NCBI GenBank assembly: GCA_950097015.1 | Contig: CATNEN010000038.1 | Span: 32,736,001 to 32,800,000 of the forward strand | Source: Macrostomum hystrix | Taxonomy: Eukaryota; Animalia; Platyhelminthes | DNA: 64,000 nucleotides | Reading direction: 5' to 3' | Notes under the pieces: generated by a model | Databases searched by the model: none | Seen by the model: only the letters and a program-made list of their open reading frames with translations | What the model was told of the DNA's origin: nothing | Translations under genes and position numbers: made by a program | Shown here: positions 1 through 30,947 of the stretch, in pieces | How the letters are laid out: every line of letters begins with the position of its first letter | Position numbering within the stretch: the stretch's first letter is position 1

Positions 1-995
1 TGAGATCCCATTCCCAATTACTGAGATCCCAATACTAATTACTGAGATCCCATTCCCAATTACTGAGATCCCAATACTAATTACTGAGATCCCAATACTA
101 ATTACTGAGATCCCATTCCCAATTACTGAGATCCCAATACTAATTACTGAGATCCCATTCCCAATTACTGAGATCCCAATACTAATTACTGAGATCCCAA
201 TACTAATTACTGAGATCCCATTCCCAATTACTGAGATCCCAATACTAATTACTGAGATCCCATTCCCAATTACTGAGATCCCAATACTAATTACTGAGAT
301 CCCAATACTAATTACTGAGATCCCAATACTAATTACTGAGATCCCATTCCCAATTACTGAGATCCCATTCCTAATTACTGAGATCCCATTCCAAATTACT
401 GAGATCCCATTCCCAATTACTGAGATCCCATTCCTAATTACTGAGATCCCATTCCAAATTACTGAGATCCCATTCCAAATTACTGAGATCCCATTCCTAA
501 TTACTGAGATCCCATTCCAAATTACTGAGATCCCAATACTAATTACTGACATCCCAATACTAATTACTGAGATCCCAATACTAATTACTGAGATACCATT
601 CCAAATTACTGAGATCCCAATACTAATTACTGACATCCCAATACTAATTACTGAGATCCCAATACTAATTACTGAGATACCATTCCAAATTACTGAGATC
701 CCAATACTAATTACTGAGATCCTATTCCTAATTACTGAGATCCCATTCCAAATTACTGAGATCCCAATACTAATTACTGAGATCCTATTCCTAATTACTG
801 AGATCCTATTTCTAATTACTGAGATCCCAATACTAATTACTGAGATCCCAATACTAATTACTGAGATCCCATTTCCAATTACTGAGATCCCATTCCCAAT
901 TACTGAGATACCATTCCCAATTACTGAGATACCATTCCCAATTACTGAGATCCCATTCCTTATTACTGAGATCCCATTCCCAATTACTGAGATCC
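1..995. repeat. 21-bp minisatellite (TGAGATCCCATTCCCAATTAC) in SLC5 intron 2
   Basis: tandem units visible from the window start up to the donor site. Confidence 0.95.
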
Positions 996-1004
996 AATTC
1001 TCAC

Positions 1005-1319
1005 CTGGTTAGCTGAGTAGATGGTCAGGCACATTCCAGTGCCGCCGATCAGCAATGTCCAGAAGCTGTGCCTGACAGTTGGGTCCGGGTTGAAGTTAAA
1101 AAAATTCAGTCGACCACCAGCGGCGGCGACATCAAAGACGCGTTGCAGGCCACCAACTTCTATGGTTGCCATGACAACCAGGCTGCAGAAGGCTACAAAC
1201 ACGATAATCATTTGTACCAAGTCGGTCCACATGACGGCTTTGATGCCGCCAAGAGCGGTGTAGAATGTGCAAACAACGCCAGTGAGAACCATGGTCAGCG
1301 GAAAGGACAGGCCTGTCAC
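1005..1319 (-). CDS. SLC5 symporter coding exon 2 (gene continues beyond the left edge of the window)
   Basis: VTGLSFPLTMVLTGVVCTFYTALGGIKAVMWTDLVQ...GRLNFFNFNPDPTVRHSFWTLLIGG...SANQ contains the SSF GGxKAVxWTD signature; AG acceptor and GTGAG donor, 315 nt, phase 0/0 compatible with exon 1. Confidence 0.93.
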
Positions 1320-1439
1320 CTTGGGTGATTCATGGAAACAGAAATCATTCGTCATCGTTTCACAAACCTCATGTGAAGCCTCTTGAAACCTCATGTGCAA
1401 CCTTACCTCAATTTGCTTGTGAACTTCGCTATTATTGGA

Positions 1440-4400
1440 GAGGAGAGTGGGCAGTAAAGTGTGCAGTAGATTGTACAGTAGTGTATAGGACAGTGTGCAG
1501 TAGAGTGTGTAGAAGAGTGTATAGGAGAGAGTGTAGTAAAGTGTACAGTAGAGTATACAGGAGAGAGTGTGCAGGAGAGTGTTTGGGAGAGTGTGTAGTA
1601 GAGTGTAAAGGAGAGTGTGCAGTAGAGTGTATACGAGAGTGTGCAGTAGAGCGTGCAGTAGAGTGTGCAGTATAGTGTGCACTAGAGTTTGCAGTAGAGC
1701 GTGCAGTAGAGTGTGCAGTAGAGAGTGCAGTAGTGCAGTAGAGTGTGCAGTAGAGTGTGCAGTAGAGTGTGCAGTAGAGTGTGCAGTAGAGTGCGCAGTA
1801 GAGTGTGCAGTATAGTGTGCACTAGAGTTTGCAGTAGAGCGTGCAGTAGAGTGTGCAGTAGAGAGTGCAGTAGTGCAGTAGAGTGTGCAGTAGAGTGTGC
1901 AGTAGAGTGTGCAGTAGAGTGCGCAGTAGAGTGTGCAGTAGTGCACTAGAGTTTGCAGTAGTGTGCAGAAGAGTGTATAGGAGAGAGTGTAGTAAAGTGT
2001 GCAGAAGAGTGTATAGGAGAGAGTGTAGTAAAGTGTGCAGTAGAGTTTGCAGTAGAGTGTGCAGAAGAGTGCGCAGTAGAGTGTGCAGTAGAGTGTGCAC
2101 TAGAGTTTTCATTAGAGTGTGCAGTAGAGTGCAGTAGTGCAATAGAGTGTGCATTAGTGCAGTAGAGTGTGCAGTAGAGTGCGCAGTAGAGTGTGCAGTA
2201 GTGTGCAGAAGAGTGCGCAGAAGAGTGCGCAGTAGAGTGTGCAGTAGTGTGCAGAAGAGTGCGCAGTAGAGTGTGCAGTAGAGTGTGCATTAGAGTGTGC
2301 AGTAGAGTGTGCAGTAGTGCAGTAGAGTGTGCAGTAGTGCAGTAGAGTGTGCAGTAGAGTGTGCAGTAGAGTTTGCAGTAGAGTGTGCAGTAGTGCAGTG
2401 GAGTGTGCAGTAGAGTGTGCAGTAGTGCAGTAGAGTGTGCAGTAGTGCAGTAGAGTGTGCAGTAGTGCAGTAGAGTGTGCAGTAGAGTGTGCAGTAGAGT
2501 GTGCAGTAGAGTGTGCAGTAGTGCACTAGAGTTTGCAGTAGAGTGTGCAGAAGAGTGTATAGGAGAGAGTGTAGTAAAGTGTGCAGTAGAGTGTGCAGTA
2601 GAGTGTGCAGAAGAGTGCGCAGTAGAGTGTGCAGTAGAGTGTGCACTAGAGTTTTCATTAGAGTGTGCAGTAGAGTGTGCAGTAGAGTGTGCAGTAGAGT
2701 GTGCACTAGAGTTTTCATTAGAGTGTGCAGTAGAGTGTGCAGTAGTGCAATAGAGTGTGCATTAGTGCAGTAGAGTGTGCAGTAGAGTGTGCAGAAGAGT
2801 GCGCAGTAGAGTGTGCAGTAGAGTGTGCACTAGAGTTTTCATTAGAGTGTGCAGTAGAGTGTGCAGTAGAGTGTGCAGTAGAGTGTGCACTAGAGTTTTT
2901 ATTAGAGTGTGCAGTAGAGTGTGCATTAGTGCAGTAGAGTGTGCAGTAGAGTGTGCAGTAGAGTGTGCACTAGAGTTTTCATTAGAGTGTGCAGTAGAGT
3001 GTGCAGTAGTGCAATAGAGTGTGCATTAGTGCAGTAGAGTGTGCAGTAGAGTGTGCAGAAGAGTGCGCAGTAGAGTGTGCAGTAGAGTGTGCACTAGAGT
3101 TTTCATTAGAGTGTGCAGTAGAGTGTGCAGTAGTGCAATAGAGTGTGCATTAGTGCAGTAGAGTGTGCAGTAGAGTGTGCAGTAGTGTGCAGAAGAGTGC
3201 GCAGTAGAGTGCGCAGTAGAGTGTGCAGTAGTGTGCAGAAGAGTGCGCAGTAGAGTGCGCAGTAGAGTGTGCACTAGAGTTTTCATTAGAGTGTGCAGTA
3301 GAGTGTGCAGTAGTGCAATAGAGTGTGCATTAGTGCAGTAGAGTGTGCAGTAGAGTGTGCAGTAGAGTGTGCAGTAGAGTGTGCACTAGAGTTTTCATTA
3401 GAGTGTGCAGTAGAGTGTGCAGTAGAGTGTGCACTAGAGTTTTCATTAGAGTGTGCAGTAGAGTGTGCAGTAGTGCAATAGAGTGTGCATTAGTGCAGTA
3501 GAGTGTGCAGTAGAGTGTGCAGTAGAGTGTGCAGAAGAGTGCGCAGTAGAGTGTGCAGTAGAGTGTGCACTAGAGTTTTCATTAGAGTGTGCAGTAGAGT
3601 GTGCAGTAGAGTGTGCACTAGAGTTTTCATTAGAGTGTGCAGTAGAGTGTGCAGTAGTGCAATAGAGTGTGCATTAGTGCAGTAGAGTGTGCAGTAGAGT
3701 GTGCAGAAGAGTGCGCAGTAGAGTGTGCAGTAGAGTGTGCACTAGAGTTTTCATTAGAGTGTGCAGTAGAGTGTGCAGTAGAGTGTGCAGTAGAGTGTGC
3801 ACTAGAGTTTTCATTAGAGTGTGCAGTAGAGTGTGCATTAGTGCAGTAGAGTGTGCAGTAGAGTGTGCAGTAGAGTGTGCACTAGAGTTTTCATTAGAGT
3901 GTGCAGTAGAGTGTGCAGTAGTGCAATAGAGTGTGCATTAGTGCAGTAGAGTGTGCAGTAGAGTGTGCAGAAGAGTGCGCAGTAGAGTGTGCAGTAGAGT
4001 GTGCACTAGAGTTTTCATTAGAGTGTGCAGTAGAGTGTGCAGTAGTGCAATAGAGTGTGCATTAGTGCAGTAGAGTGTGCAGTAGAGTGTGCAGTAGTGT
4101 GCAGAAGAGTGCGCAGTAGAGTGCGCAGTAGAGTGTGCAGTAGTGTGCAGAAGAGTTGCGCAGTAGAGTGCGCAGTAGAGTGTGCACTAGAGTTTTCATT
4201 AGAGTGTGCAGTAGAGTGTGCAGTAGTGCAATAGAGTGTGCATTAGTGCAGTAGAGTGTGCAGTAGAGTGTGCAGTAGAGTGTGCAGTAGAGTGTGCACT
4301 AGAGTTTTCATTAGAGTGTGCAGTAGAGTGTGCAGTAGAGTGTGCACTAGAGTTTTCATTAGAGTGTGCAGTAGAGTGTGCAGTAGTGCAATAGAGTGTG

Positions 4401-4890
4401 CATTAGTGCAGTAGAGTGTGCAGTAGAGTGTGCAGTAGTGTGCAGAAGAGTGCGCAGTAGAGTGCGCAGTAGAGTGTGCAGTAGTGTGCAGAAGAGTGCG
4501 CAGTAGAGTGCGCAGTAGAGTGTGCAGTAGTGTGCAGAAGAGTGCGCAGTAGAGTGTGCAGTAGAGTGTGCACTAGAGTTTGCATTAGAGTGTGCAGTAG
4601 AGTGTGCAGTAGTGCAGTAGAGTGTGCACTAGAGTTTGCATTAGAGTGTGCAGTAGAGTGTGCAGTAGAGTGTGCAGTAGAGTGTGCACTAGAGTTTGCA
4701 GTAGAGTGTGCAGTAGTGCAGTGGAGTGTGCAGTAGAGTGTGCAGTAGTGCAGTAGAGTGTGCAGTAGTGCAGTAGAGTGTGCAGTAGAGTGTGCAGTAG
4801 AGTGTGCAGTAGAGTGTGCAGTAGAGTGTGCAGTAGTGCAGTAGAGTGTGCAGTAGTGCAGTAGAGTGTGCAGTAGAGTGTGCAGAGTGT
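1440..4890. repeat. 12-bp (GTAGAGTGTGCA) satellite with 8-bp variants filling SLC5 intron 1
   Basis: about 3.4 kb of tandem units. Confidence 0.95.
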
Positions 4891-4915
4891 ATTGCCCACC
4901 CTCTATTAGTCTCAC

Positions 4916-5359
4916 CTGCTGGAAGGTGATGGCTGGAGCGTAGAGCACCACAGCCTGATAGAAGAACATCTGAATGCAGAACACAATGGATGCGGCGGTT
5001 CGCACTGATGAGCTAAACCTCAGCTCTAGATAGTGCTGAGCAGTGAGCACTTTATTCCTGTACAGTACAGGCATGTACACTTCTGCGGTGATTGGAAATG
5101 CCAGAAAATAGCTGAGGCCCAGGATGATGTACTGTACGCCAGACTGATAGACTTCGGCAGTTGTGCCAAGAATTGATATAGCGGAGATGAACGAGGCCAT
5201 GACAGAGAAGGTCACTGGCAGTAGTGTCATCTGTCTAGAGCCTAGAAATATGTCCTTGGACGAGCGCTGCTTGTGATAAGCGATGCCAATAGCAGCTGAG
5301 GCGAGCAGCACAATGGCAAAGATTAGATAGTCTAACCAGTGGAACACAATGTTCGCCAT
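4916..5359 (-). CDS. SLC5 family sodium:solute symporter (SLC5A5/6/8/12-like), coding exon 1
   Basis: MANIVFHWLDYLIFAIVLLASAAIGI...FLGSRQMTLLPVTFSVMASFISAISILGTTAEVY...YLELRFSSSVR...YQAVVLYAPAITFQQ is the typical N-terminus of the SMVT/SMCT/NIS clade; acceptor tttcag just upstream (exon edge 5382), donor GTGAG after 4916; 444 nt, phase 0. Confidence 0.93.
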
Positions 5360-5527
5360 GGTGGGGCGTTGGGACTTCAAAGCTGAAATAATTTAGAATG
5401 CGGTCAAATTGCACCTACAGGTTTCACACCATTATTATTGAAAAAATATGTATCAACAACATGATATCAACAACAGTCATGCGATCCAATGTTATACCAA
5501 ATGCGATATCAACACAGAGATTATAAG

Positions 5528-15074: not shown

Positions 15075-15792
15075 ATGCAGTCAAGTCAGCGTTCGAATGC
15101 GCATCCGCGGCCCGAGTCGCCGTCTATGCCGCCGATTAATCCGGAGGTGTCTTTTGGCCTCGGCGGCGGCAGCAACAGCAGCAGCCTGCCAGGCAGTGGA
15201 TCAACTCGGGCCACGACTAGTCCAAGAGGCCCGGGGGCGCAGGATTGGAGCAGTACACCCATGGGCGTGAGGGTTAGGTCTAGTTCGTCTGGGCGCGGAG
15301 GTCTCGGCGGCGGCGGCGGCGGCTTTGACAGTGGCTATCAAACCGAGTCACCGTCAGCGGGCGCTGCGTCGTCAGCGACAAGACCAATTCAATTTCATTC
15401 GGACCCGTACGAGCAGCAGCAGCAGCAGCAGCAGGAGCAGTTCCGTATGAGCATGGAGGATTTAAATCTGGGCCTGTCGCCGGCAAATCAAATGATGCAG
15501 CAGCAGGCGCCACCTGGCACGTTTCGTCCAGTTAGTCCCCAGCCCGCTAGGAATGCGAACGGGCCCAACTATTACTACAGCTATAACCATCACTATTATA
15601 ATAATCAGGCCGCTGGCCCTACGAGACCAACGACGTACGGTTACAGTTATCCGTTTCCCTATCGGCCACCCTCCGTGCCAATGGCCGACCTGCCGGACGA
15701 TGTAGAAGAAGGCGAAGCGATAGCTCAACAGAGCCTACTCACCGATCCGGACAGTGAGGTTGCCAATGTTGCTATGCGCAATCATGGGCATG
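15075..15792 (+). CDS. Candidate BH3-only gene, first coding exon A (S/G/Q/P/Y-rich disordered region with DSGYQT motif)
   Basis: ATG at 15075, open GC-rich frame, donor G|GTGAGT at 15792/15793, phase 1. Confidence 0.75.
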
Positions 15793-18700
15793 GTGAGTCA
15801 AGTTTTTTTTATAGTTTTTAAACTATTTATAGTTTTTAGTTTTTATGTCATAATTCGATCAAGCGAATAAAAGGGACTTCTAACTCTAAGGGTCAATTCT
15901 TAGAGCTTTAAAATATCATGTGATGCGCTTTGCCACCATTGGCACCAGGCGCGCACGCATTTATCGCGTGATCAGATTCAAGTGAAAATCTTCCAATCCA
16001 ACTTATCAAACTTTAGCAACCACTTATTACTTAAGAATAAAGTGCGGAGTATAATTTCAATCGAAAGCGAAAGAGATTCTGTCAATTTTGTATTAAAACT
16101 GTTTCACTGTTCACATGTGCCATTTAGACTCAATTTATTATACAGAATACAGATAGATATAACAAATAAGCACGTTTTTATTAAATAGGTGTCACGTGAT
16201 CCTTGTTGCTACAGCTTGTCAGGGGCTGGGGCAGCGGAAAGAATAGGCATTTGCAAAATTCTGTTAGTCTATGGCCTGTGTCACGTGCGGAAAAGTGCAT
16301 CGAAATGAATAACTACGTGAACTTTAGATAGCTAGCTATTTACTAAAGAACTCTGGAGGCTATAAAAAGTGAGTCACAAGTGCTTGCACCGAGTGACCCC
16401 AAGTTTGCAGATTTTTGTTGCTTAGCCCAATCAAGCAAGCAACTTGACTAGGCTAGCTGCCGCTTGACATAATAGAACTTTGTTCTTTGACAAAATAGAC
16501 ATCCAAGACTAAGTAGACTTTGTTTTAAGCGGTTTAGAGGATAAGAAATCTTTTCAGAAATAATACAAAATATGAATGTTATTAGAAACAAAACAGTATA
16601 TTCCAATGAAAGTTTTTTAAGCTTATGAAATGTATCATGTAGGCATATGCCAGCATTGTATTTAATTAATGTAAGTTTTGTTTAAATAGTGCCCGCACTT
16701 GGCATGTCAGGACAGCTAAATAGTGCCCGAACTGTTTTTTAACCTCGTGTCAGAATCTCCGTGCAAACTAACTCTAAATTTGGATATGATGTAATAAAGC
16801 CGCTTTCTTAATAATGTCTTCCAGCCAGTTATCTAAGCCAAAACTGTTATCAGTAGGTTGATAATTATATCCTAAATTCTCATGCCCTATTAATATTTAG
16901 GGGGGTTTGTAAGCTTATATCAAGTTTCAACAAATTAGTGTGTTTAGAGCTGGGGTTCGTGGGGCTTGCATTGGTATTTATTTTATTAACAGCGGGTAGG
17001 TGTCATACGAAGCGATGTCCACTCTGGACAGATCTAATGAATCATCTTAACTATAATCTGTTTAAACCATTGAACAGAGTGGTGGGAAACGGACACAAAA
17101 ATAGTTTCCATTCCCACGAAGCGCAAGTTTTCTTGCTAATCCTTGTTGTTTTCGCTTACTGTTTTGTCTGGGTCTTTGTTTTCTGTCACTGGCCGGTGCA
17201 TTGTCTGTTAGAAACAGTTTAAACGATCTTAAGCGTTCAACAAACACCTCTGCAGGACAGTAGGCAATAAATAACACATGTTTGCCCCTAGTTCGCCTAG
17301 GCCTAGGCTCTCTACTATTGCTATATGGATTAGCAGTTAATAAGATCAAGATTCAGAGGACCCTGTGTTCGTTAGCGTTAGTACTTTTTTCAATTCCTTT
17401 CTTTTGACGCTTTCGAAGCACAGGTCATTGTCAGTCAGTTGTGAAGTGCGATAAATACAGCCCTTGTTCTATTTTTAGAATCAGTTTTCTCAGTTGGGGC
17501 ACCCACCGCTTGTCGCCACCTGTCGACTATCGAGGGCCCTAGCTGACCCACCGCCCCAATTCCAGGCCCGCTGAAAAAAATAAAAAAACAACAGAAAACA
17601 CCGGGGCCGCTGAGACAGTCCTTCATTTTTTCGACCCAAGTTACGGGGTCAAATGCCTCGATCTTAAATAGACTTTCTTCCGTCTTAATAAATCTAGGCA
17701 TGGCAACATCTCATTGTCTAGACTCTTAGCTCATTGTTACGAGTAGCGAGCAACAACAATAGTCAAATAACATTAAATGCCCCTTCCTTCATCCCCCCCC
17801 CCAGTCGAGGGCCCTCCCGCTGTTATTTTTGACTGCCCCCATCCTAAACAGTTGGGCGGAGAGATGACTGGACAAGCCTGCTATTAGAAGCGGTAAAAAT
17901 TACGAATTATCTATTTTTATCCCTTTGAACATGCGATTTTTTCAGACCACCCACCCACCCCACCCCGTGACCCTGTGCGGTCAGAATTTGGACAGACTAG
18001 CCAGTCAGACCAATGCGGGACCATGGCAACGTGCGAGTGCCAACCCGCCCCACACACACCAACCTCCCCAGTTTTATTTTGCCGCGCCGCTCACACCTGG
18101 GTATATAAAATCAGGGTTTGAGAGTCCCATACCGCATATTGCTTTAAGATTTGCGTTATAAATCAGATTAGGTGAGAGTGAGACCAGTCAGATTATAATG
18201 CCGTCACAGCAAGAGCAGCAGCAGCAGCGGCAGCGACAGCAACAGCTACACGAGCCGGTAACCTTCGGGCTAGAGTCCGACAACGAGGAAGATGAAGTGT
18301 TTTACAGTGACGCATCAACTTTTGCTGCTGCTGCTGTTGCCGCGGACACTGACTCAGTAGCTGATGAAATACAGGCTTTGCGAAATCGCCGACTTCGTGA
18401 GTAAAGAAAAACATATTTTTCTCCATGGTCACGCCCTAATGAGAACATAGGAACATGTATGGCGTTTTTTTAAATGTTCACTCGTGAGTCATGAGCACTT
18501 CTGGGTCTTACACTTGACCACTCTCTGTCCCACACCTGACCAATCCTTGTCCCACACCTGACCAATCTCTGTCCCACACCTGACCAATCTCTGTCCCACA
18601 CCTGACCAATCCTTGTCCCACACCTGACCAATCCTTGTCCCACACCTGACCAATCTCTGTCCCACACCTGACCAATCTCTGTCCCAATCCTGACCAAGCC

Positions 18701-21700
18701 TTGTCCCACACCTGACCAATCCTTGTCCCACACCTGACCAATCTCTGTCCCACACCTGACCACTCTCTGTCACACACCTGGCCAATCCTTGTCCCACACC
18801 TGACCACTCTCTGTCCCACACCTGACCACTCTCTGTCCCACACCTGACCAATCCTTGTCCCACACCTGACCAATCCTTGTCCCACACCTGACCAATCTCT
18901 GTCCCACACCTGACCACTCTCTGTCCCACACCTGACCAATCATTGTCCCACACCTGACCAATCTCTGTCCCACACCTGACCAATCTCTGTCCCACACCTG
19001 ACCAATTTTTTTAATGGTCACTCGTGAGTCATGAGCACTTCTGGGTCTTACACTTGACCACTCTTTGTCCCACACCTGACCAATCCTTGTCCCACACCTG
19101 ACCAATCTCTGTCCCACACCTGACCAATCTCTGTCCCACACCTGACCAATTTTTTTAATGGTCACTCGTGAGTCATGAGCACTTCTGGGTCTTACACTTG
19201 ACCACTCTTTGTCCCACACCTGACCAATCCTTGTCCCACACCTGACCAATCTCTGTCCCACACCTGACCAATCTCTGTCCCACACCTGACCAATCTCTGT
19301 CCCACACCTGACCAATTTTTTTAATGGTCACTCGTGAGTCATGAGCACTTCTGGGTCTTACACTTGACCACTCTCTGTCCCACACCTGACCAATCCTTGT
19401 CCCACACCTGACCAATCTCTGTCCCACACCTGACCAATCTCTGTCCCACACCTGACCACTCTGTCCCACACCTGACCAATCTCTGTCCCACACCTGACCA
19501 ATCTCTGTCACACACCTGACCAATCTCTGTCACACACCTGACCAATCTCTGTCACACACCTGGCCACTCTGTCCCACACCTGACCAATCTCTATCACACA
19601 CCTGACCACTCTGTCCCACACCTGACCAATCTCTGTCACACACCTGACCAATCTGTCCCACACCTGACCAATCTCTGTCCCACACCTGACCAATCTCTGT
19701 CACACACCTGACCAATCTCTGTCACACACCTGACCAATCTCTGTCACACACCTGGCCACTCACTCCTGAAACAAACGTGCATTTAATTATGCGTCGAAAT
19801 TACAAGCTGGCAGTTAAATGTGAATATTCTAGTTTATATTAGGAATCGTCATAACCAATTGCAGTGAAGCACTTGTCAATCCAATTTATTTTTGTTAGAA
19901 TTATAAAACTTTTTCCTGTACCGATTTCTGAATATGGCTTCCATTTTCGTTTTGTTTATTTATCTTAGGAAGGAATTTATTTCGTGTAAGAAATGCCGGC
20001 TTTGTTAAAATTTACTAGCCAGTGGGTGTCGTATTTTCTGGATTTATTTTAATTCCAAACCTACCCGCCAAGACAGCCTGAAGTGTTATTTCTGATAAAA
20101 TCTCCTTTCTCAAGTAATTGGCTTGCTTCTTTGTGCATGTGTGGGTTTTTTGGGGGACATCACGCTACACGCAGAGAGGGATAATTGTCTTATGTCCTAT
20201 GTTGCACGTTCAAGATGTTATTGGTTGTGTAATTATAGCCACTTTAGATAAGACTGTTATACCATTGTCAATCAATTTTGCTATTAGATGCGGCCCTTGA
20301 AGAATGCACCCCATTAGCGTCAAGTTTGACCTCAAATGTCTTTGAAATAGCGTTCAGAGATTTATTTTGAATCCATCAGGCATCAGGCATCATTTCTAGG
20401 CATCAGATCTCATTGTCTAAAGACTCTGCGAATCCTATTGTCCGAGGACTCAGAGAATCTTGTTTGTCCGAGGACTCAGGGAATCTTGTTTATCCAAGGA
20501 CTCTAGAAATATTGTTTGTCCGAGGACTCAGGGAGTCTTGTTTATCCAAGGACTCTAGAAATATTGTTTGTCCGAGGACTCAGGGAATCTTGTTTGTCCG
20601 AGGACTCAGGGAGTCTTGTTTATCCAAGGACTCTAGAAATATTGTTTGTCCGAGGACTCAGGGAGTCTTGTTTATCCAAGGACTCTAGAAATATTGTTTG
20701 TCCGAGGACTCAGGGAATCTTGTTTATCCAAGGACTCTAGAAATATTGTTTGTCCGAGGACTCAGGGAATCTTGTTTATCCAAGGACTCTAGAAATATTG
20801 TTTGTCCGAGGACTCAGGGAATCTTGTTTGTCTGAGGACTCAGGGAATCTTGTTTGTCTGAGGACTCAGGGAATCTTGTTTGTCCGAGGACTCAGGGAAT
20901 CTTGTTTGTCCGAGGACTCAGGGAATCTTGTTTGTCCGAGGACTCAGGGAATCTTGTTTGTCCGAGGACTCAGGGAATCTTGTTTATCCAAGGACTCTAG
21001 AAATATTGTTTGTCCGAGGACTCAGGGAATCTTGTTTGTCCGAGGACTCAGGGGATCTTGTTTGTCTGAGGAATCTGGAAATCTTGTTTATCCAAGGACT
21101 CTAGAAATCTTGTTTGGTTGAGGACTCAGGGAATCCCATTTGTCTGAGGACTCAGGGAATCCCATTTGTCTGAGGACTCAAGGAATCCCATTTGTCTGAG
21201 GACTCAGGGATTCCCATTTGTCTGAGGACTCTGGGAATCCCATTTGTCTGAGGACTCAGGGATTCCCATTTGTCTGAGGATTCAGGGAATCCCATGTCTG
21301 AGGATTCAGGGAATCCCATTTGTCTGAGGATTCTGGGAATCCGATTCCCATTTGTCTGAGGATTCAGGGAACCCCGTTAGTCTGAGGACTCAGGGAATCC
21401 CATGTCTGAGGACTCGGGGAAGCTCATTTTTTAGGACTAGTGAAATCCCAATTGTCCCACTTAACAGTTGAAATCCCAGGTCACCAATTAAAGGTCCAGA
21501 GTTGCAAAGTGTTCAACTAAAATAGTTATTCAAATATAACTAATGGTGCGAATGCACTTGAAAACTAGTACTAGAAGTTGTAAATTGAAAAACGCGACTA
21601 AATGCACGTGTCTAGACGGCACTTACAAGAGCCCAGCTATATTTATAATCATATAGAAGTGTCGCTTTGTCGGGTCATTTTAGTTTAACTGTACGAGTTA

Positions 21701-24700
21701 AACAGTACGGGTGCTAGGCAGCTGTATATACTTGTCTGACTGTTGTGAAGTAAGGTTATTGTGTATATATAGCCACTCAGTCGAGTATGAAAAAGAAGTT
21801 TTTTTAGAAATTTCCACAGAGCAAATACTCTATACTCTATAGTTCAACAGGCAGAGAGTTATGTTTGAACTATGTACTGTGCTCGCGGTGTCAATGACTC
21901 ACGCTGTATATTTAGCATGACTGCTGTATGCCCGCTGTGAGCATTGCGTGCAGCTTACCCAATTTGGCTTGTCATTTGTCTCGCTTCTAATTTGCTTAGA
22001 ATTCGTACAATTAAATTAGAGATGTGACGGAAAGCCTCGAGATTTAGGATATTTAGAACTTGGGGAGACTTTAATATTTGGGATGTTTTAAACTTGGGAA
22101 AGCCTCGAGATTTGGGATATTGTGAACTTGGGAAAGCCTCGAGATTTGGGATATTTTAAACTTGGGAAAGCCTCGAGATTTGGGATATTTTAAACTTGGG
22201 AAAGCCTCGAGATTTGGGATATTTAGAACTTGGGTTTAATATTTGGGATGTTTTAAACTTGGGAAAGCCTCGAGATTTGGGATATTTTAAACTTGGGAAA
22301 GCCTCGAGATTTGGGATATTGTTGACTTGGGAAAGCCTCGAGATTTAGGATATTCAAAACTTGGGAAAGCCTCGAGATTTGGGATATTTTAAACTTGAGA
22401 AAGCCTCGAGATTTGGGATATTTTAAACTTGGGAAAGTCTCGAGATTTGGGATATTGTTGACTTGGGAAAGCCTCGAGATTTAGGATATTCAAAACTTGG
22501 GAAAGCCTCGAGATTTGGGATATTTTAAACTTGAGAAAGCCTCGAGATTTGGGATATTTTAAACTTGGGAAAGCCTCGAGATTTGGGATATTTTTGACTT
22601 GGGAAAGCCTCGAGATTCGGGATATTCAAAACTTGGCAAAGCCTCGAGATTTAGGATATTCAAAACTTGGGAAAGCCTCGAGATTTGGTATATTCAAAAC
22701 TTGAGATAGCCTCGAGATTTGGGATATTGTGAACTTGGGAAAGCCTCGAGATTTAGGATATTCAAAACTTGGGAAAGCCTCGAGATTTGGGATATTTTAA
22801 ACTTGGGAAAGCCTCGAGATTTGGGATATTGTGAACTTGGGAAAGCCTCGAGATTTGGGATATTGTGAACTTGGGAAAGCCTCGAGATTTGGGATATTTT
22901 AAACTTGGGAAAGCCTCGAGATTTGGGATATTGTGAACTTGGGAAAGCCTCGAGATTTGGGATATTTTAAACTTGAGAAAGCCTCGAAATTTGGGATATT
23001 TTAAACTTTTGAAAGCCTCGAGATTTGGGATATTGTGAACTTGGGAAAGCCTCGAGATTTGAGATATTTTAAACTTGGGAAAGCCTCGAGATTTGGGATA
23101 TTGTTGACTTGGGAAAGCCTCGAGATTTGAGATATTTTAAACTTGGGAAAGCCTCGAGATTTGGGATATTGTTGACTTGGGAAAGCCTCGAGATTTGGGA
23201 TATTGTGAACTTGGGAAAGCCTCGAGATTTAGGATATTCAAAATTTGGGAAAGCCCCGAGATTTGGGATATTTTAAACTTGAGAAAACCTCGAGATTTGG
23301 GATATTGTGAACTTGGGAAAGCCTCGAGATTTGGGATATTTTAAACTTGGGAAAGCCTCAAGATTCGGGATATTTTTAACTTGAATAGAAACTTTGAGTT
23401 GTTTGAAAAAATGTTAAATAAGGGAATCGTTAAGTTTAAAAAAAATTGGGAATGGTTAAATAAGGGATTTAAAACTGAAATATTAATCTTTAAATTTCAA
23501 GATATTTTTAACGAGGGAAAATCAAGCTTAACGATTTTGAAATGTGCGAATTACAAGTAGTTAAAAGTGTCTAAAGTTCAAATTGACTTAACTTTGTTAA
23601 AATAAATCAACAAAAAAGACATTTTTTACCTGAAAATAGTTTTCAACGTGCCAATTTTTTTTTTATTTTTAACTCGTGAGGTACTTGACCACGTGAGGTG
23701 AGCAAATTATTTGACACAAACGCGAACAATGCCTGCTTATTAGGTGACCTTGCCGAAAAAATGCAAAAATTTATACAATACGAAAACACGTAATTTCGAC
23801 ATTGTCAAACAAAAATGTGTGTCTCCAGGAAAGTGGCTTTGGGTCATTAAATCTTTTGCACGTTGCTTTCAAAGCTATGCTATAATATTTGAAATTGCTC
23901 GAGTTTTTCAACTACTGAAAAACAAGACTGACTGCTAACAAACAAGCGTTAGCGGTTGTTCTAGTGGATACAAGTGGGATGACAAATTACATCGATCACA
24001 GATCGCAGTAGATGAGATCTGAAAGCTTAGTGGATGGGGTCTGGAATCCTAGTAGATGGGGTCTGGAATCCCAGTAGATGGGGTCTGGAATCCCAGTAGA
24101 TGGGGTCTGGAATCCTAGTAGATGGGGTCTGGAATCCTAGTAGATGGGGTCTGGAATCCCAGTAGATGGGATCTGGAATCCCAGTAGATGGGATCTGGAA
24201 TCCCAGTAGATGGGATCTGGAATCCCAGTAGATGGTAGATGGGATCTGGAATGCCAGTAGATGGGATCTGGAATCCCAGTAGATGGGATCTGGAATCCCA
24301 GTAGATGGTAGATGGGATCTGGAATCCTAGTAGATGGGATCTGGAATCCCAGTAGATGGGATCTGGAATCCCAGTAGATGGGATCTGGAATCCTAGTAGA
24401 TGGGATCTGGAATCCTAGTAGATGGGGTCTGGAATCCCAGTAGATGGGGTCTGGAATCCCAGTAGATAGGATCTGTTATCTGGAATCCCAGTAGATGGGA
24501 TCTGGAATCCCAGTAGATAGGATCTGTTATCTGGAATCCCAGTAGATGGGATCTGAAATCCCAGTAGATAGGATCTGGTCATCTGGAATCCTAGTAGATG
24601 GGATCTGGAATCCCAGTAGATGGGATCTGGAATCCCAGTAGATGGGATCTGGAATCCCAGTAGATAGGATCTGTTATCTGGAATCCTAGTAGATGGGATC

Positions 24701-27700
24701 TGGAATCCCAGTAGATAGGATCTGTTATCTGGAATCCCAATAGATGGGATCTGGAATCCCAGTTGATGGGATCTGACATCCTATGCGATAGAATCTAGAA
24801 TGCTAATGGATGAAATTTGGATTCTAACAAAGAAAAGCACATTTGGTTAGGCCACAACTTTAACTAGATGTACTGTACCTGTAGGTAATCAAGAATCCCA
24901 TTTTTTCCATCTCGCCTTTCAGTCCAGGGTCGCCATCAGCAGGAGCCGCTGCCTGATCTAGTCATGGAGACGACCATCGTTGACGTTCGCTTCCGCAGCC
25001 GCTCCGTCCCGGTGATGCCAGACGAAGCCCTGGAGCTGATGCGGCAACGTGGACGCCCGGAGGATGGCGTCGAGCTCGTTGCTATGGGGCTGAGACGCAT
25101 CGGAGACGCCATTGCCAATAGTCGGCCAGTGCGGAGCGAGATCTTTGTTGTGAGTTTTGTCACTCTTTCACAATGTCACTCTACTCACTCACTCACTCAC
25201 AATGAGCTCTATTCCCAGCTTAAGATCTTTCATTTATCTTCCTATTCCTATCTTCCTATATTCCTATCTTCCTATCTGCAATGCACTGATTTTGCACTCT
25301 GCGTCATACAGTTGGTGATCTATGCCGCATGAAATGGAATGAATAAAAAAATCCACCGCGGAACAATAGACAGCTGATTCTGTATTGGCGAATCGCAGCG
25401 CTACCTTTAAGGCCGGATTTAAAGGCTTGGGAGAGGGGAAGAAAACGTCACGTGACGACACACTAAAAAATAAAGTAGTTATTTTATTTTTGGTTTCCGT
25501 GGATTCCTCCCTATATGTTCTCTTAGTGATTGCAGAAGCAATAAAGTGGTTCAGTGTTTCAATAGTATCACTATCTCGCTGACAAGTAAGGATTCTAAAA
25601 ATCCTATAGAGTCAAATCACGAGCATCCGATATGTAGTGAAAAACTTGTATCAAAATAATGTTAGCTTATTCCGTTTTTGCCAGCTGAATACCGGAAATA
25701 AGGCAATGATTTGTTTAAACCTGAACTAGTTTAAGAAGGATCTCAATTTAAAATTGCATGCCGAAGATTTCCTAGTCTAGATCTAGAAGTCCATTAGCAC
25801 CTTGAGATTTTCTTATCTAGATCTAGAAGTCCATTAACACCTTTAGATTTTCTTATCTAGATCTAGAAGTCCATTAACACCTTTAGATTTTCAAGTCTAG
25901 ATCTAGAAGTCCATTAACACATTTAGTTTTTCAAGTCTAGATCTAGAAGTCCATTAGCACCTTGAGATTTTCTTGTCTAAATCTAGAAGTCCATTAGCAC
26001 CTTGAGATTTTCAAGTCTAGATCTAGAAGTCTATTAGCACCTTGAGATTTTCTTGTCTAAATCTAGAAGTCCATTAGCACCTTGAGATTTTCAAGTCTAG
26101 ATCTAGAAGTCCATTAGCACCTTGAGATTTTCTTGTCTAGATCTAGAAGTTCATTAGCACCTTGAGATTTTCTTATCTAGATCTAGAAGTCCATTAACAC
26201 CTTTAGATTTTCAAGTCCGGATCTAAAAGTCCATTAACACCTTTAGATTTTCAAGTCTAGATCTAGAAGTCCATTAACACCTTTAGTTTTTCAAGTCTAG
26301 ATCTAGAAGTCCATTAACACCTTGAGATTTTCTTGTCTAAATCTAGAAGTCCATTAGCACCTTGAGATTTTCAAGTCTAGATCTAGAAGTCCATTAGCAC
26401 CTTGAGATTTTCAAGTCTAGATCTAGAAGTCCATTGTCAACTATTTGATGGTCTAAATTCAGAAATTCCTTAATTGGTTGAAACGTAAATTTCTATATTT
26501 TTTCAAACGTTTCTACATTGCGGAGGAGGATGGGTGGACAGCTTGGGGGTCCAGGGTTCAATCGGTGCGAACCTCATCCAGTATTTGTCCTCCAATTGTC
26601 CGTAGCATTAGCTAGAGAGTAGTGGATCTCCTATTGGCCAGCTATCATTGGCTGTTGTTCAAAGCGCGTGTTTTCGGGGTCAGCTGACTTGGAGTTGCTA
26701 GCTTCTTACTATACCATAGTTTCCTCATAGCACTTACTATTAACTACTAATTCCGTAATTATATAAAGTTGTTTGAATCTATTGGACAGGACTCATTACA
26801 TAAAAGGTATATTCTATTTGTGTAAATATGATATACTATTTGGCGCCTGAGTCATAACAGAATACGATCTAAATGTGCACTCCCCTTTATGAGCCTATTA
26901 CCTCATTTATTTATTTATACTGACGTAGAATAATATTTACTGTTTTCTAATACCTTTTTTGTTACCAATTCAATTCAATGTTTAACAAGCTCTATTCTGT
27001 GTTTATCCTGAACTATGCAATACCACTCGATTAGGAACCATAACAATGTCCCTCTTTCTCACTCACTATCTACCTCTTAATTTCCCTCTTAATCTCCCTC
27101 TCTACCGCTTAATCTCCCTCTCAATCTCCCTTTCAATCTCCCTGTCAATCTCCCTCTCAATCTCCCTGTCAATCTCACTGTCAATCTCCCTCTCAATCTC
27201 CCTGTCAATCTCCCTCTCAATCTCCCTGTCAATCTCCATGTCAATCTCCCTCTCAATTGTCTCTCAATCTCCCTGTCAATCTCCCACTCTCCCTCTCAAT
27301 CTCCATCTCAATCTCCCTGTCAATCTCCCACTCTCCCTCTCAATCTCCATCTCAATCTCCCTGTCAATCTCCCTCTCAATCTCCCTGTCAATCTCCCACT
27401 CTCCCTCTCAATCTCCATCTCAATCTCCCTGTCAATCTCCCTCTCAATCTCCCTCTCAATCTCCCTGTCAATCTCCCTCTCAATCTCCCTCTCAATCTCC
27501 CTCTCAATCTCCCTCTCAATCTCCCTCTCAATATCCCTCTCAATCTCCCTGTCAATCTGCCTCTCAATCTGTCTCTCAATCTCCCTCTCAATCTCCCACT
27601 CTCCCTCTCAATCTCCATCTCAATCTCCCTGTCAATCTGCCTCTCAATCTGTCTCTCAATCTCCCTCTCAATCTCCCACTCTCCCTCTCAATCTCCATCT

Positions 27701-30145
27701 CAATCTCCCTGTCAATCTGCCTCTCAATCTGTCTCTCAATCTCCCTCTCAATCTCCATCTCAATCTACCTGTCAATCTGCCTCTTAATCTCCCTCTCAAT
27801 CTCCCTGTCAATCTCCCTCTCAATCTCCCTCTCAATCTCCATCTCAATCTCCCTCTCAATCTCCCTCTCAATCTCCGTCTTTTTCTCTCTTAATCTCCCA
27901 CTCTGAAATTTCCCCTAGAAAACAGTTTCATAAATTGAGAGAGGTAGAGAGGGAGATAGAGATTATTTGTTATGATTCCCCTATCATAAATTATGTTTTC
28001 AAAGAAAGACACACACGTGGCTGGTTATTTTTAGTATCCAACACTCAGCCAGCTAAGCTAAATGCATTTGCTAACTAACTGTACACGGGAAACTGTTGAG
28101 ATGAACTCCGGTAAGAGCAAGTTGTGAGTCCTAATATAACTGGGTCTTGTTTACCCATAACATGCTCGGCCAGAAATGACAAAAAATGTTGGTTTCCTTT
28201 TTTATTTACAGGTAAAACGGACCCTGGATTATTAGTTATTAATAAAGCTTCTTAGAAGACTCACCATCTACACCATACTATTTTAGCCTAGCAACGCGCA
28301 GCTTCTCTAGTTCTTCTGGAAAATGCTTTTTTCGAAAATGCCGTCAGGGTCTATTTTTAAACTCGGGTCTGGGCGTGACCTTTTTTATAAGTAAGTGCAT
28401 GGCACGCTTAGTCCAGAACTTATATCTAGTTTTATCTGGCCAATCTGTCTATTCTGATATCTTATAGTGTATATACATTGAACCCAGTTTAAAGTTGATT
28501 TATTATCATTTGTCAATTGTCACGTGCTTTGTTTAAAACTGAACACTGCAGGGTAGGAAAGATCAGCTGACTGGTCGGTCTATATGTTCTTGTAGCCCGC
28601 ATGACTTTGATGCTTCGTGATAGTTTATAAAAAAGAGAAGATAGAAGTACCGATATTGCGGTCAAAACTATATCATTCAGATTCAACGAATACTACTTGC
28701 CCCTGCAGCAGTAGTATGATTGCGTAGTCTATAGTTTTTCAGTTTGAATTTAACATTTAAAACTGTTTATTTTGTGTCTATCATTTATGTAATGAGCTCT
28801 CTTAAGGAACTATCTATATGGTAGCCTGTATGCCCTCCTCTAAATGCATCACTTTGTGCTAAATCGTCACTTTGTGCATCTTTAGGGACCATCTCCCACC
28901 CCTATCTATCTTCTCTCTCCCTCTCCCTCTCTCCCTCTCTCCCTCTCTCTCCCTCTCTCACTCTCTCTACCTCTCTCACCATCTCTATCTTCCTCTCTAC
29001 CTCTCTCAACATCTCTATCTCCCTCTCTACCTCTCTCACCATCTCTATCTCCCTCTCTACCTCTCTCAACATCTCTATCTCCCTCTCTACCTCTCAACAT
29101 CTCTATCTTCCTCTCTACCTCTCTCAACATCTCTCTCCCTCTCTACCTCTCTCAACATCTCTATCTCCCTCTCTACCTCTCTCACCATCTCTATCTCCCT
29201 CTCTACCTCTCTCAACATCTCTATCTCCCTCTCTACCTCTCTCACCATCTCTATCTCCCTCTCTACCTCTCTCACCATCTCTATCTCCCTCTCTACCTCT
29301 CTCACCATCTCTATCTCCCTCTCTACCTCTCTCACCATCTCTATCTCCCTCTCTACCTCTCTCACCATCTCTACCTCCCTCTCTACCTCTCTCACCATCT
29401 CTATCTCCCTCTCTATCTCCCACTCTCTTCATCTCCCTCTCTCTTCATCTCCCTCTCTCTTCATCTCCGTCTCTCTTTATCTCCCTCTCTCTTTATCTCC
29501 CTCTCTCTTTATCTCCCTCTCTCTTCATCTCCCTCTCTCTTTATCTCCCTCTCTCTTTATCTCCCTCTCTCTTTATCTCCCTCTCTCTTTATCTCCCTTT
29601 CTCTTCATCTCCCTCTCTCTTTATCTCCCTCTCTCTTTATCTCCCTCTCTCTTCATCTTCCTTTCTCTTCATACTTCTGTCTTTTTATCTCTCTATCTCC
29701 CGCTATGTATCTACATCTCGCTCTATCTCCCCTTCCACTTTGTCCATGTCCTCTCTGCTTGTCTAACGTTATATTCTCTATATCCTATAACTCCTGCAGA
29801 TATTATTTGTTCAATCAATCACATTTTTTTCTAACTAACAATTTTTACTAGGTTCGTCGCCTACGCGGCTACTCCGTCTCCGAGGCTGAACGACAGGCGC
29901 GTTCTGTAGCTGGCGCCAGTGGTGGCGCGAGTGGTGGCGCTAGCGGTGGCGCCAGTGGCGTCACGTCGTCCTCCTACCCCGGGCCAGGCGACGCAATGTC
30001 GCATTTTATGCACGGCTCGCGCAGTCTGTCGCTGATTTCTCGCGCACTCTACACCCTGTCGGGTGCCGGCATTTCTAACGAGGAGGCCGAAGACGAAGAC
30101 GATAGCCGCAGTGAAGGCAATGCTGGCAGTCGTGGCGACTTTTGA
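15075..30145 (+). CDS. Candidate BH3-only protein gene (BAD/BIM-like motifs). Isoform A exons 15075-15792, 24923-25149, 29852-30145 (412 aa); isoform B exons 18198-18396, 24923-25149, 29852-30145 (239 aa)
   Basis: GC-rich coding-like exons with GTGAGT donors and YAG acceptors; phases join without stops (1/1, 0/0); shared exon encodes RFRSRSVP and VAMGLRRIGDAI; the rest is low-complexity/disordered. Confidence 0.72.
18102..18110 (+). promoter_or_regulatory. TATA box upstream of exon B
   Basis: TATATAAAA about 90 nt 5' of ATG 18198, preceded by GC-rich and CACCC/GC-box-like sequence. Confidence 0.55.
18198..18396 (+). CDS. Candidate BH3-only gene, alternative first coding exon B
   Basis: TATATAAAA at 18102-18110, ATG at 18198, MPSQQEQQQ...EEDEVFYSDAS...LRNRRL, donor C|GTGAGT at 18396/18397, phase 1 like exon A. 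Confidence 0.68.
18468..19760. repeat. 22-bp minisatellite (TGACCAATCTCTGTCCCACACC) with four copies of a roughly 50-bp spacer
   Basis: tandem units; spacer TCACTCGTGAGTCATGAGCACTTCTGGGTCTTACACT recurs near 18478, 19018, 19162 and 19328. Confidence 0.95.
20430..21420. repeat. 26-bp minisatellite (GAGGACTCAGGGAATCTTGTTTGTCC)
   Basis: tandem units with two alternating variants. Confidence 0.95.
22030..23382. repeat. 34-bp minisatellite (TTGGGAAAGCCTCGAGATTTGGGATATTTTAAAC)
   Basis: tandem units. Confidence 0.95.
24030..24776. repeat. 22-bp minisatellite (GTAGATGGGATCTGGAATCCCA)
   Basis: tandem units with internal TGGGAT/ATCCCA inverted repeat. Confidence 0.95.
24923..25149 (+). CDS. Candidate BH3-only gene, shared BH3-encoding exon
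   Basis: Polypyrimidine tract + tttcAG acceptor (24921-24922); ...DVRFRSRSVPVMPDEALELMRQRGRPEDGVELVAMGLRRIGDAIANSRPVRSEIFV; donor GTGAGT at 25150. Confidence 0.8.
25776..26435. repeat. 40-bp minisatellite containing the palindrome TCTAGATCTAGA
   Basis: tandem units. Confidence 0.95.
27075..27903. repeat. 12-bp pyrimidine-rich repeat (TCAATCTCCCTC)
   Basis: tandem units. Confidence 0.95.
28212..28235 (+). CDS. Possible alternative short terminal exon (VKRTLDY-stop) of the BH3 gene
   Basis: Strong acceptor ttggtttccttttttatttacAG, phase-0 frame ending in TAG, AATAAA at 28241-28246. Confidence 0.35.
   Translation, partial: VKRTLDY
28900..29700. repeat. CT-rich 30-bp repeat and polypyrimidine tract
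   Basis: CTCTCTACCTCTCTCACCATCTCTATCTCC units followed by shorter CT-rich units. Confidence 0.93.
29852..30145 (+). CDS. Candidate BH3-only gene, terminal coding exon (absent from the ORF track)
   Basis: Branch-point-like ctaactaac + tttttactAG acceptor; phase-0 frame VRRLRGYSVSEAERQARSVAGASGGASGG...SLISRALYTLSGAG...GSRGDF-TGA; GC-rich island followed by AT-rich UTR-like sequence. Confidence 0.75.
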   Translation, partial: VRRLRGYSVSEAERQARSVAGASGGASGGASGGASGVTSSSYPGPGDAMSHFMHGSRSLSLISRALYTLSGAGISNEEAEDEDDSRSEGNAGSRGDF

Positions 30146-30264
30146 AAAATTGAATTTTTTATTTAATCATCCCGCAATCTCAGCCATGCCTGACTAACAT
30201 CTTGTCTCATTTCCATTAATATTTCTTCCTGCTTCCGTGTCTTTTGTATAATCCCCTGTCTCTC

Positions 30265-30947
30265 TTCCCAAATCCCCCGACTCTATTCCCCAAATCCCCA
30301 ATATCTATTCCCCAATCCCCCCACTCTATTCCCTAATCCCCAGACTCTATTCCCTAGTCGCCCACTCTATTCCCTAATCCCCCGTCTCTATTCCCTAATC
30401 CCCCTACTCTATTCCCTAATCCCGAGACTCTATTCCCTAATCCCCCGTCTCTATTCCCTAATCCCCCGACTCTATTCCCTAATCCCCCGACTCTATTCCC
30501 TAATCCCCCGACTCTATTCCCTAATCCCCCGACTCTATTCCCTAATCACCCGTCTCTATTCCCTAATCCACAGACTCTATTCCCAAATCCCCCGACTCTA
30601 TTCCCTAATCCCCAGACTCTATTCCCTAATCCCTCGACTCTATTCCCTAATCCCCCGACTCTATTCCCTAATCCCCCGACTCTATTCCCTAATCCCCCGA
30701 CTCTATTCCCTAATCCCCAGACTTTATTCCCTAATCCCTAGACTCTATTCCCTAATCCCCCGACTCTATTCCCTAATCCCCAGACTCTATTCCCTAATCC
30801 CCCGACTCTATTCCCTAATCCCCAGACTCTATCCCCTAATCCCCAGACTCTATCCCCTAATCCCCCGACTCTATTCCCTAATCCCCCGACTCTATTCCCT
30901 AATCCCCCGACTCTATTCCCTAATCCCCCGTCTCTATTCCCTAATCC
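30265..30947. repeat. 21-bp minisatellite (CTCTATTCCCTAATCCCCCGA) just downstream of the BH3-gene stop codon
   Basis: tandem units. Confidence 0.95.

Follow-up and report, generated by a model that had tools for sequence, protein, structure and literature searches.

A transcribed Macrostomum gene encodes a candidate BH3-only type regulator with a BAD-like layout

A 64,000-nucleotide stretch of the Macrostomum hystrix genome (GenBank assembly GCA_950097015.1, contig CATNEN010000038.1, positions 32,736,001 to 32,800,000 of the forward strand; hereafter the window) contains a spliced, transcribed gene at 15075-30145 whose predicted product carries a BH3-like motif. With moderate confidence, we read the protein as a BH3-only type regulator with a BAD-like layout, and as a lineage-restricted candidate. 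BH3-only proteins initiate mitochondrial apoptosis, and are short, disordered and nearly invisible to homology searches. To our knowledge, few are known outside vertebrates, C. elegans, Hydra and schistosomes. A conserved and expressed candidate would give an initiator to the flatworm pathway, with its BAK-, BOK- and Bcl-xL-like genes, in a genus used in the laboratory to study regeneration, stem cells and ageing. No publication on a Macrostomum BH3-only gene came up in a literature search. The candidate is unreported in the literature found and, if real, adds to a known functional kind.

The locus is a genuine protein-coding gene with a correct exon model, a conclusion that we hold with very high confidence. 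All coding exons lie on the forward strand, and two of them are alternative first coding exons. Exon 1a (15075-15792; 239 codons plus 1 base) belongs to the long isoform. Its start is the first ATG to follow an in-frame stop, its donor at 15793 is gtgagt, and it encodes a low-complexity N-terminus rich in Q, G, S, Y, N and P with one RxRxxS site (RVRSSS). Exon 1b runs from an ATG at 18198 to 18396 (66 codons plus 1 base), where gtgagt follows, and encodes the short acidic N-terminus (MPSQ...FGLES...EVF) of a 239-amino-acid isoform. The shared core exon at 24923-25149, flanked by tttcag and gtgagt, opens with 2 bases that finish the split codon, followed by 75 codons, and carries a conserved block (EPLPDLxxETTxVD), a first predicted phosphosite and the BH3-like helix. 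The last coding exon extends from 29852, after ctag, to 30145 (97 codons plus a TGA stop at 30143-30145), and contains a second RxRxxS site, a Gly/Ser-rich linker, the blocks SSYPG..MSHFMH and RALYTLSGAGIS.EEAE, and an acidic tail. Exons 1a (718 nt) and 1b (199 nt) leave the reading frame in phase 1, from which the shared exon (227 nt) returns it to phase 0; by arithmetic, the isoforms are 412 and 239 amino acids long, respectively. The gene is present as a single copy in its own genome (220 Mb, 42 contigs).

Transcription and splicing were assessed using Logan contigs (~50 Mb for each run) from four sequencing runs, which were compared with positions 24500-30400. The runs come from one 2020 study and are not four independent ones, and expression levels and transcript ends are not obtainable from such contigs. 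The junction 25149>29852 (GT..AG) was spanned by contigs in all four runs. The last 30 bases of exon 1a preceded 24922 in contigs from four of four runs, while the last 30 bases of exon 1b preceded 24923 in one contig, from run X1. The contigs skip a 4.7-kb intron and are therefore derived from cDNA (complementary DNA), showing that the gene is transcribed; they continue past the stop codon to at least 30393 as 3′ untranslated region. Two TATAAA-like boxes are located immediately 5′ of exon 1b (18101-18162), and the exon 1b contig reaches back to ~18162. This arrangement is consistent with the short isoform having its own promoter.

The first-pass annotation, made from the letters of the sequence, had placed four scattered exons at these borders and spliced them in phase. 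Its borders are borne out by the spliced contigs and by canonical splice sites, and all three of the junctions that it named for checking (15792>24923, 18396>24923 and 25149>29852) were found. It had also read the shared exon in the frame that gives V-A-M-G-L-R-R-I-G-D-A-I at 25078-25113. This LRRIGD frame is the only open one in the exon, the other two frames holding three or four stops each. The alternative that there is no gene, with chance open frames lying between satellites or with the LRRIGD frame unused, has next to no probability. Long satellite-derived open reading frames nearby do show that open frames alone mean little, but the exons joined by spliced contigs in four runs are exactly those predicted, the competing frames of the core exon contain stops, and a second Macrostomum species has an orthologous protein in the same frame. 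This alternative is already refuted.

The BH3-like motif at 25078-25113, V-A-M-G-L-R-R-I-G-D-A-I (VAMGLRRIGDAI), reads h1-small-x-x-L(h2)-x-x-I(h3)-G-D-x-I(h4). It has the feature of the BH3 class, h1-small-x-x-L-x-x-h3-(G/A/S)-D-x-h4 on an amphipathic helix, in this case a predicted one. When a loose BH3 expression was run over the six-frame translation of the whole window, this motif was the sole match. Chance occurrence was estimated with composition-matched shuffles, for which the residues of the three exon peptides were pooled. The strict BH3 motif arose in 1.25e-4 of shuffles, a low rate for any one protein, and requiring an R[ST]x[ST]xP site as well lowered the share to 1e-5.

An exhaustive HMMER search for relatives, with the 75-residue core exon as query and 1.84 billion representatives as target, returned four matches at E ≤ 0.001. 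The sole true one is a 240-amino-acid "hypothetical protein" of Macrostomum lignano (P0002, Mlig023455, E 3.5e-14); the other three (P0001, P0003 and P0004) were rejected on reading as repeat proteins. P0002 is 61% identical to the core exon over the matched stretch (query residues 4-68), 59% identical over the whole exon, and 60% identical to the last exon. It is the counterpart of the short isoform, its head MPSQ..V.FGLES..D.VF being aligned by eye with exon 1b. Its BH3-like motif reads VAMRLRSIGDEI, with V-A-M-x-L-R-x-I-G-D-x-I common to both species, and all seven constrained BH3 positions are kept: h1 (V), the small residue (A), L, h3 (I), G, D and h4 (I). Word-index protein searches with P0002 alone, or with a profile of P0002 and the window exon peptides, gave no further relative, although a poly-Gln run probably filled the candidate list of the profile search. 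At detectable similarity, and as judged by these comparisons, the family is limited to Macrostomum in the databases searched.

AlphaFold2 was used to predict the structures of P0002 and of the window exon peptide, and no globular fold was found in either. P0002 is predicted to be mostly disordered (mean predicted local distance difference test score, pLDDT, 44), with a helix at residues 105-122 that spans the motif. In the window exon peptide, a helix at residues 45-64 spans the motif, with block means of 83 and 74, the former being the highest of the chain. P0002 was further compared with the ESM Atlas, in which a score below 0.9 is a lead only, and at least 170 shared features at 0.85-0.95 are typical of true family members. 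Its nearest named clusters were BMF (0.85, 188 shared features), PUMA/BMF, BMF/BIM-BH3, PXT1, BIK and three BIM clusters. P0002 also fits the 15-position PROSITE BH3 signature PS01259, in the form we take it to have, at 15 of 15 positions (VAMRLRSIGDEIDSS).

The motif is accompanied by two predicted phosphosites. RxRxxS is the consensus of Akt-type and other basophilic kinases, and RSxSxP is the mode I motif of 14-3-3 proteins. Phosphosite 1, R-F-R-S-R-S-V-P (24988-25011, forward strand), fits both patterns and lies 25 residues before the BH3-like motif; its M. lignano counterpart is R-V-R-S-Q-S-V-P. Phosphosite 2, R-L-R-G-Y-S followed by V-S (29858-29875, forward strand), fits RxRxxS, lies ~20 residues after the motif, and is identical in M. 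lignano (RLRGYSVSEAERQ). Genes for 14-3-3 proteins were found in the same genome. Our hypothesis is that the phosphoserines of the two sites could be held by one 14-3-3 dimer, with the intervening helix buried. That the protein is under 14-3-3 control of the BAD type is a tentative suggestion from these motifs.

No BH1, BH2 or BH4 region and no Bcl-2 fold was detected, in line, for BH1 and BH2, with the first-pass annotation: none of the exons matched PF00452 or any other Pfam profile, and no [NDSTGHE]W[GA][RKH] string occurs within 24925-25149, the one exon covered by that scan. No transmembrane anchor was evident by eye (no membrane-anchor predictor was run); the most hydrophobic stretch of the last exon, LISRALYTLSGAGIS, is not a transmembrane segment. 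The first-pass annotation had proposed a BAD/BIM-like BH3-only protein, likely to be annotated only as hypothetical. The BH3-only part of this proposal drew support from the motif, from its conservation in the orthologue, where L, G and D, all four hydrophobic positions and RSxSVP are retained, from the predicted helix and from the ESM Atlas neighbours. P0002 is indeed annotated merely as a hypothetical protein and, given that it is the sole relative and that no Pfam profile matched, nothing was found to make the protein a clear orthologue of an unrelated family. Membership of BAD or BIM was not shown, no BAD, BIM, BMF or PUMA profile being matched at E ≤ 10. The likeness to BAD and BIM is, by these profile comparisons, resemblance and not membership, and membership of BAD, BIM or BMF is not supported. 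The candidate may be a very diverged relative of BAD, BIM or BMF, or a convergent, lineage-specific invention.

Several results weigh against the BH3-only reading. BH3 signatures are short, degenerate linear motifs and, with the strict form arising at 1.25e-4 per protein, a few accidental hits are expected in a proteome of ~20,000 proteins. The window motif departs from the assumed PS01259 pattern at three C-terminal positions (A, A and N). The ESM Atlas score of 0.85 is below the 0.9 line, is only a lead and may in large part repeat the motif, and the exon peptide alone gave no usable match there. The Pfam profiles of BAD, BIM, BMF and PUMA matched neither P0002 nor any exon at E ≤ 10, a scan of the worm's own genome with the BMF profile (PF15185) found nothing, and a corresponding scan with the BIM-BH3 profile (PF08945) did not pick this exon. 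PDB sequence searches with the exon peptide, with a 25-residue piece around the motif and with P0002 returned noise only, and no BH3 peptide. The evidence for conservation comes from one congeneric species only. Finally, three blocks that match no known motif are conserved as strongly as the BH3-like motif, namely EPLPDLVMETTIVD in the shared exon (24943-24984), SSYPG..MSHFMH (29975-30017) and RALYTLSGAGIS.EEAE (30044-30094).

The PF08945 scan had a single match in the genome, at positions 2575-2607 of locus L014 (G000:C39:18829080-18829112, + strand; 17.6 bits). It was rejected, being a chance string, WIAQRLRRIG without the Asp, in a 28-codon non-coding frame.

Part of this evidence can be read in favour of a rival explanation, in which the protein has nothing to do with cell death and serves instead as a disordered substrate or adaptor in signalling (a growth-factor/Akt target held by 14-3-3, for example), the BH3-like string is a chance match, and conservation of the motif would reflect another helix-mediated interaction. 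The motif is degenerate enough to occur by chance several times per proteome, a chance WIAQRLRRIG exists in non-coding sequence elsewhere in the genome, the EPLPDL..ETT.VD, MSHFMH and RALYTLSGAGIS blocks are as conserved as the motif, and no profile of a BH3-only family matches. However, both species keep every one of the seven constrained BH3 positions, the motif coincides with the one best-predicted helix, the rest of the protein being disordered, the ESM Atlas neighbours are almost exclusively BH3-only families, and the kinase and 14-3-3 sites beside the motif repeat the layout of BAD. We regard the signalling-substrate explanation as rather unlikely, and prefer a BH3-only type regulator.

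A further rival retains the motif as a functional element that binds Bcl-2 proteins, yet assigns it to a protein that is no death initiator: a target of pro-survival Bcl-2 proteins in the manner of Beclin 1, with a role in autophagy or metabolism (compare the glucokinase role of BAD). The evidence from the motif is the same for this proposal as for a BH3-only regulator, and the extra conserved blocks and the 239-residue low-complexity head suggest roles beyond a bare BH3. It is nevertheless improbable, as the protein has no second domain of any kind and its ESM Atlas neighbours are classical killers (BMF, PUMA, BIK and BIM), not proteins of the Beclin type.

A BH3-only regulator would act on proteins of the Bcl-2 family, and the genome was searched for them. 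At least 11 loci (L001-L011) scored above the cut-off of the Pfam Bcl-2 profile (PF00452). Their BH1 strings are NWGR in seven, HWGK in two and HWGR in one. Among them are a BAK-like locus (L001, E 6e-33), a BOK-like locus (L002, E 4.8e-35; best PDB match BOK, 5wdd) and a locus resembling Bcl-xL and Bcl-w (L007, E 2.7e-18). BAK-, BOK- and Bcl-xL-like loci being present, the genome therefore contains a three-part Bcl-2 partner system for a BH3-only protein. The BAK-like gene's own BH3, IGRQLAEIGDDI, aligns to that of human BAK, and shows the same h1-small-x-x-L-x-x-I-G-D-x-I pattern as the candidate.

The family is far larger than the three members reported for parasitic flatworms, with at least 11 loci, of which L004 and L009 also count as Bcl-xL-like. 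It includes a BAK-like pair (L001 and L005) and a Bcl-xL-like trio (L006-L008), whose open frames stop right after GGW or GDW, the classic position of the BH2 intron. There are two BOK-like genes, L002 (G000:C33:82951-83256, + strand) and L003 (G000:C25:6461971-6462273, + strand), with HWGK as BH1. A 2024 study reported that platyhelminths retained only BAK, with BAX and BOK lost, and Macrostomum is absent from its Bcl-2 tree (PMC11463336). BOK seems, from the two predicted genes, to be retained in this early-branching flatworm.

We propose a mechanism in which the disordered BH3-only regulator would act in the mitochondrial death pathway. Bcl-xL-like proteins of the worm would receive the amphipathic helix VAMGLRRIGDAI in their hydrophobic groove, and/or the helix would touch a BAK-like protein. 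Pairing of the helix's conserved Asp with the Arg in the BH1 string NWGR would release or activate BAK or BOK. Once RFRSRSVP and RLRGYSVS are phosphorylated, a 14-3-3 dimer would dock on them and mask the BH3, and the alternative promoters would add an extra layer of control. The bolder proposal, that a BAD-like survival switch (kinase phosphorylation, 14-3-3 capture and silencing of the BH3) exists in an early-branching flatworm, with two sites bracketing the BH3 for one 14-3-3 dimer, is one that we consider doubtful.

If such a switch did exist, its logic would either date to the bilaterian ancestor, with genes of the BAD/BMF type diverged beyond recognition, or have been invented twice. As M. 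lignano allows RNA interference and transgenesis, the gene would also open the control of stem-cell and germ-cell death by growth factors to direct experiment in an invertebrate that regenerates. The candidate would also offer a test of whether BAD-type control by kinases and 14-3-3 proteins is ancient or convergent. A motif that does not bind would provide a useful caution on motif-based BH3 calls.

The introns of the gene were described in the first-pass annotation as filled with minisatellites, and Tandem Repeats Finder detected seven or more arrays in them, with periods of 22, 26, 34, 22, 40, 12 and 16-60 bp. In the intron between exon 1b and the shared exon, arrays occupy parts of 18510-24775 (22 bp at 18510-19758, 26 bp at 20438-21438, 34 bp at 22029-23383 and 22 bp at 24002-24775). 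Those of the last intron lie within 25765-29699, and comprise a 40-bp array at 25765-26435 and CT-rich arrays of 12 bp at 27057-27880 and of 16-60 bp at 28912-29699. Two long open reading frames inside this intron, 27046-27906 and 28872-29834, were rejected as coding sequence, being repeat artefacts. Both CT-rich satellites are partly covered by RNA contigs, with a word depth of up to ~17, and backward joints (29151>27661/27581) with a common 21-base insert appeared in four of four runs. The joints may reflect cross-mapping of repeats, intron retention or a differently arranged allele.

Neighbouring genes were found on both sides. Downstream, 36816-64000 on the forward strand contains a large deubiquitinase gene of the USP9X/USP34 type, with open reading frames that match UCH (E 1e-17) and DUF3517 (E 4e-7). 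Upstream, a sodium:solute symporter (SSF) gene is recognizable at 984-5380 on the reverse strand from two open reading frames of exon size (Pfam E 4e-10 and 4e-11).

Comparison of the candidate with known BH3-only systems begins within its own phylum. BH3-only proteins of schistosomes were reported by Lee et al. 2011 (PNAS 108:6999), as cited in PMC3962096 and PMC8998228. As far as these citing papers convey, the schistosome system has three parts (pro-survival, BAK-like and BH3-only), the same as inferred here in Macrostomum. In contrast, neither schistosome nor planarian proteins came up in the HMMER search with the core exon, so that homology is not detectable. Reviews note that BH3-only proteins of schistosomes and nematodes do not work as search seeds beyond those lineages (PMC3962096, PMC8998228). 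According to a 2022 survey, the BH3-only proteins of different invertebrates cannot be linked to each other, those of other lophotrochozoans are only "potentially present", and a Bad homologue occurs in coelacanths (Actinistia), with none given from earlier-branching lineages (PMC8998228). A paper on lophotrochozoan apoptosis does not treat flatworm BH3-only proteins (PMC11463336).

BMF is the nearest ESM Atlas cluster to P0002, and is similar to it in size and disordered. The acidic MPSQ...(D/E)(D/E)VF head of the short isoform recalls the N-terminus of BMF. The two differ in that PF15185 is unmatched in the exons, in P0002 and in the whole genome, and in that the BH3 of BMF has Ala where the candidate has Gly. 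BIM (BCL2L11) shares the LRRIGD hexapeptide and an h1-small pair (I-A in BIM, V-A in the candidate), and is also disordered with alternative isoforms. Unlike BIM, the candidate matches neither PF06773 nor PF08945, and has no C-terminal hydrophobic anchor by eye. ETTIVD was considered as a dynein-light-chain motif like those of BIM and BMF, and was rejected, as it has no TQT/Gln anchor despite its matching position.

The comparison with BAD (PF10514) concerns layout as well as the motif. Neither the exons nor P0002 matched PF10514 at E ≤ 10. The BH3 core of BAD is LRRMSD, with a regulatory Ser, and both flatworm proteins have Gly at the position of this residue. The second site of the candidate follows the BH3 instead of preceding it, so that the two sites bracket the helix, and the candidate has two promoter-specific N-termini. 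In several respects the two are alike. Both are disordered, with no BH1, BH2 or membrane anchor, and both have the core L-R-R-hydrophobic-small-D. At the level of sequence motifs, both also carry an RxRSxSxP Akt/14-3-3 site just before the BH3, which in BAD itself reads RSRSAP, and a further basic-kinase site nearby.

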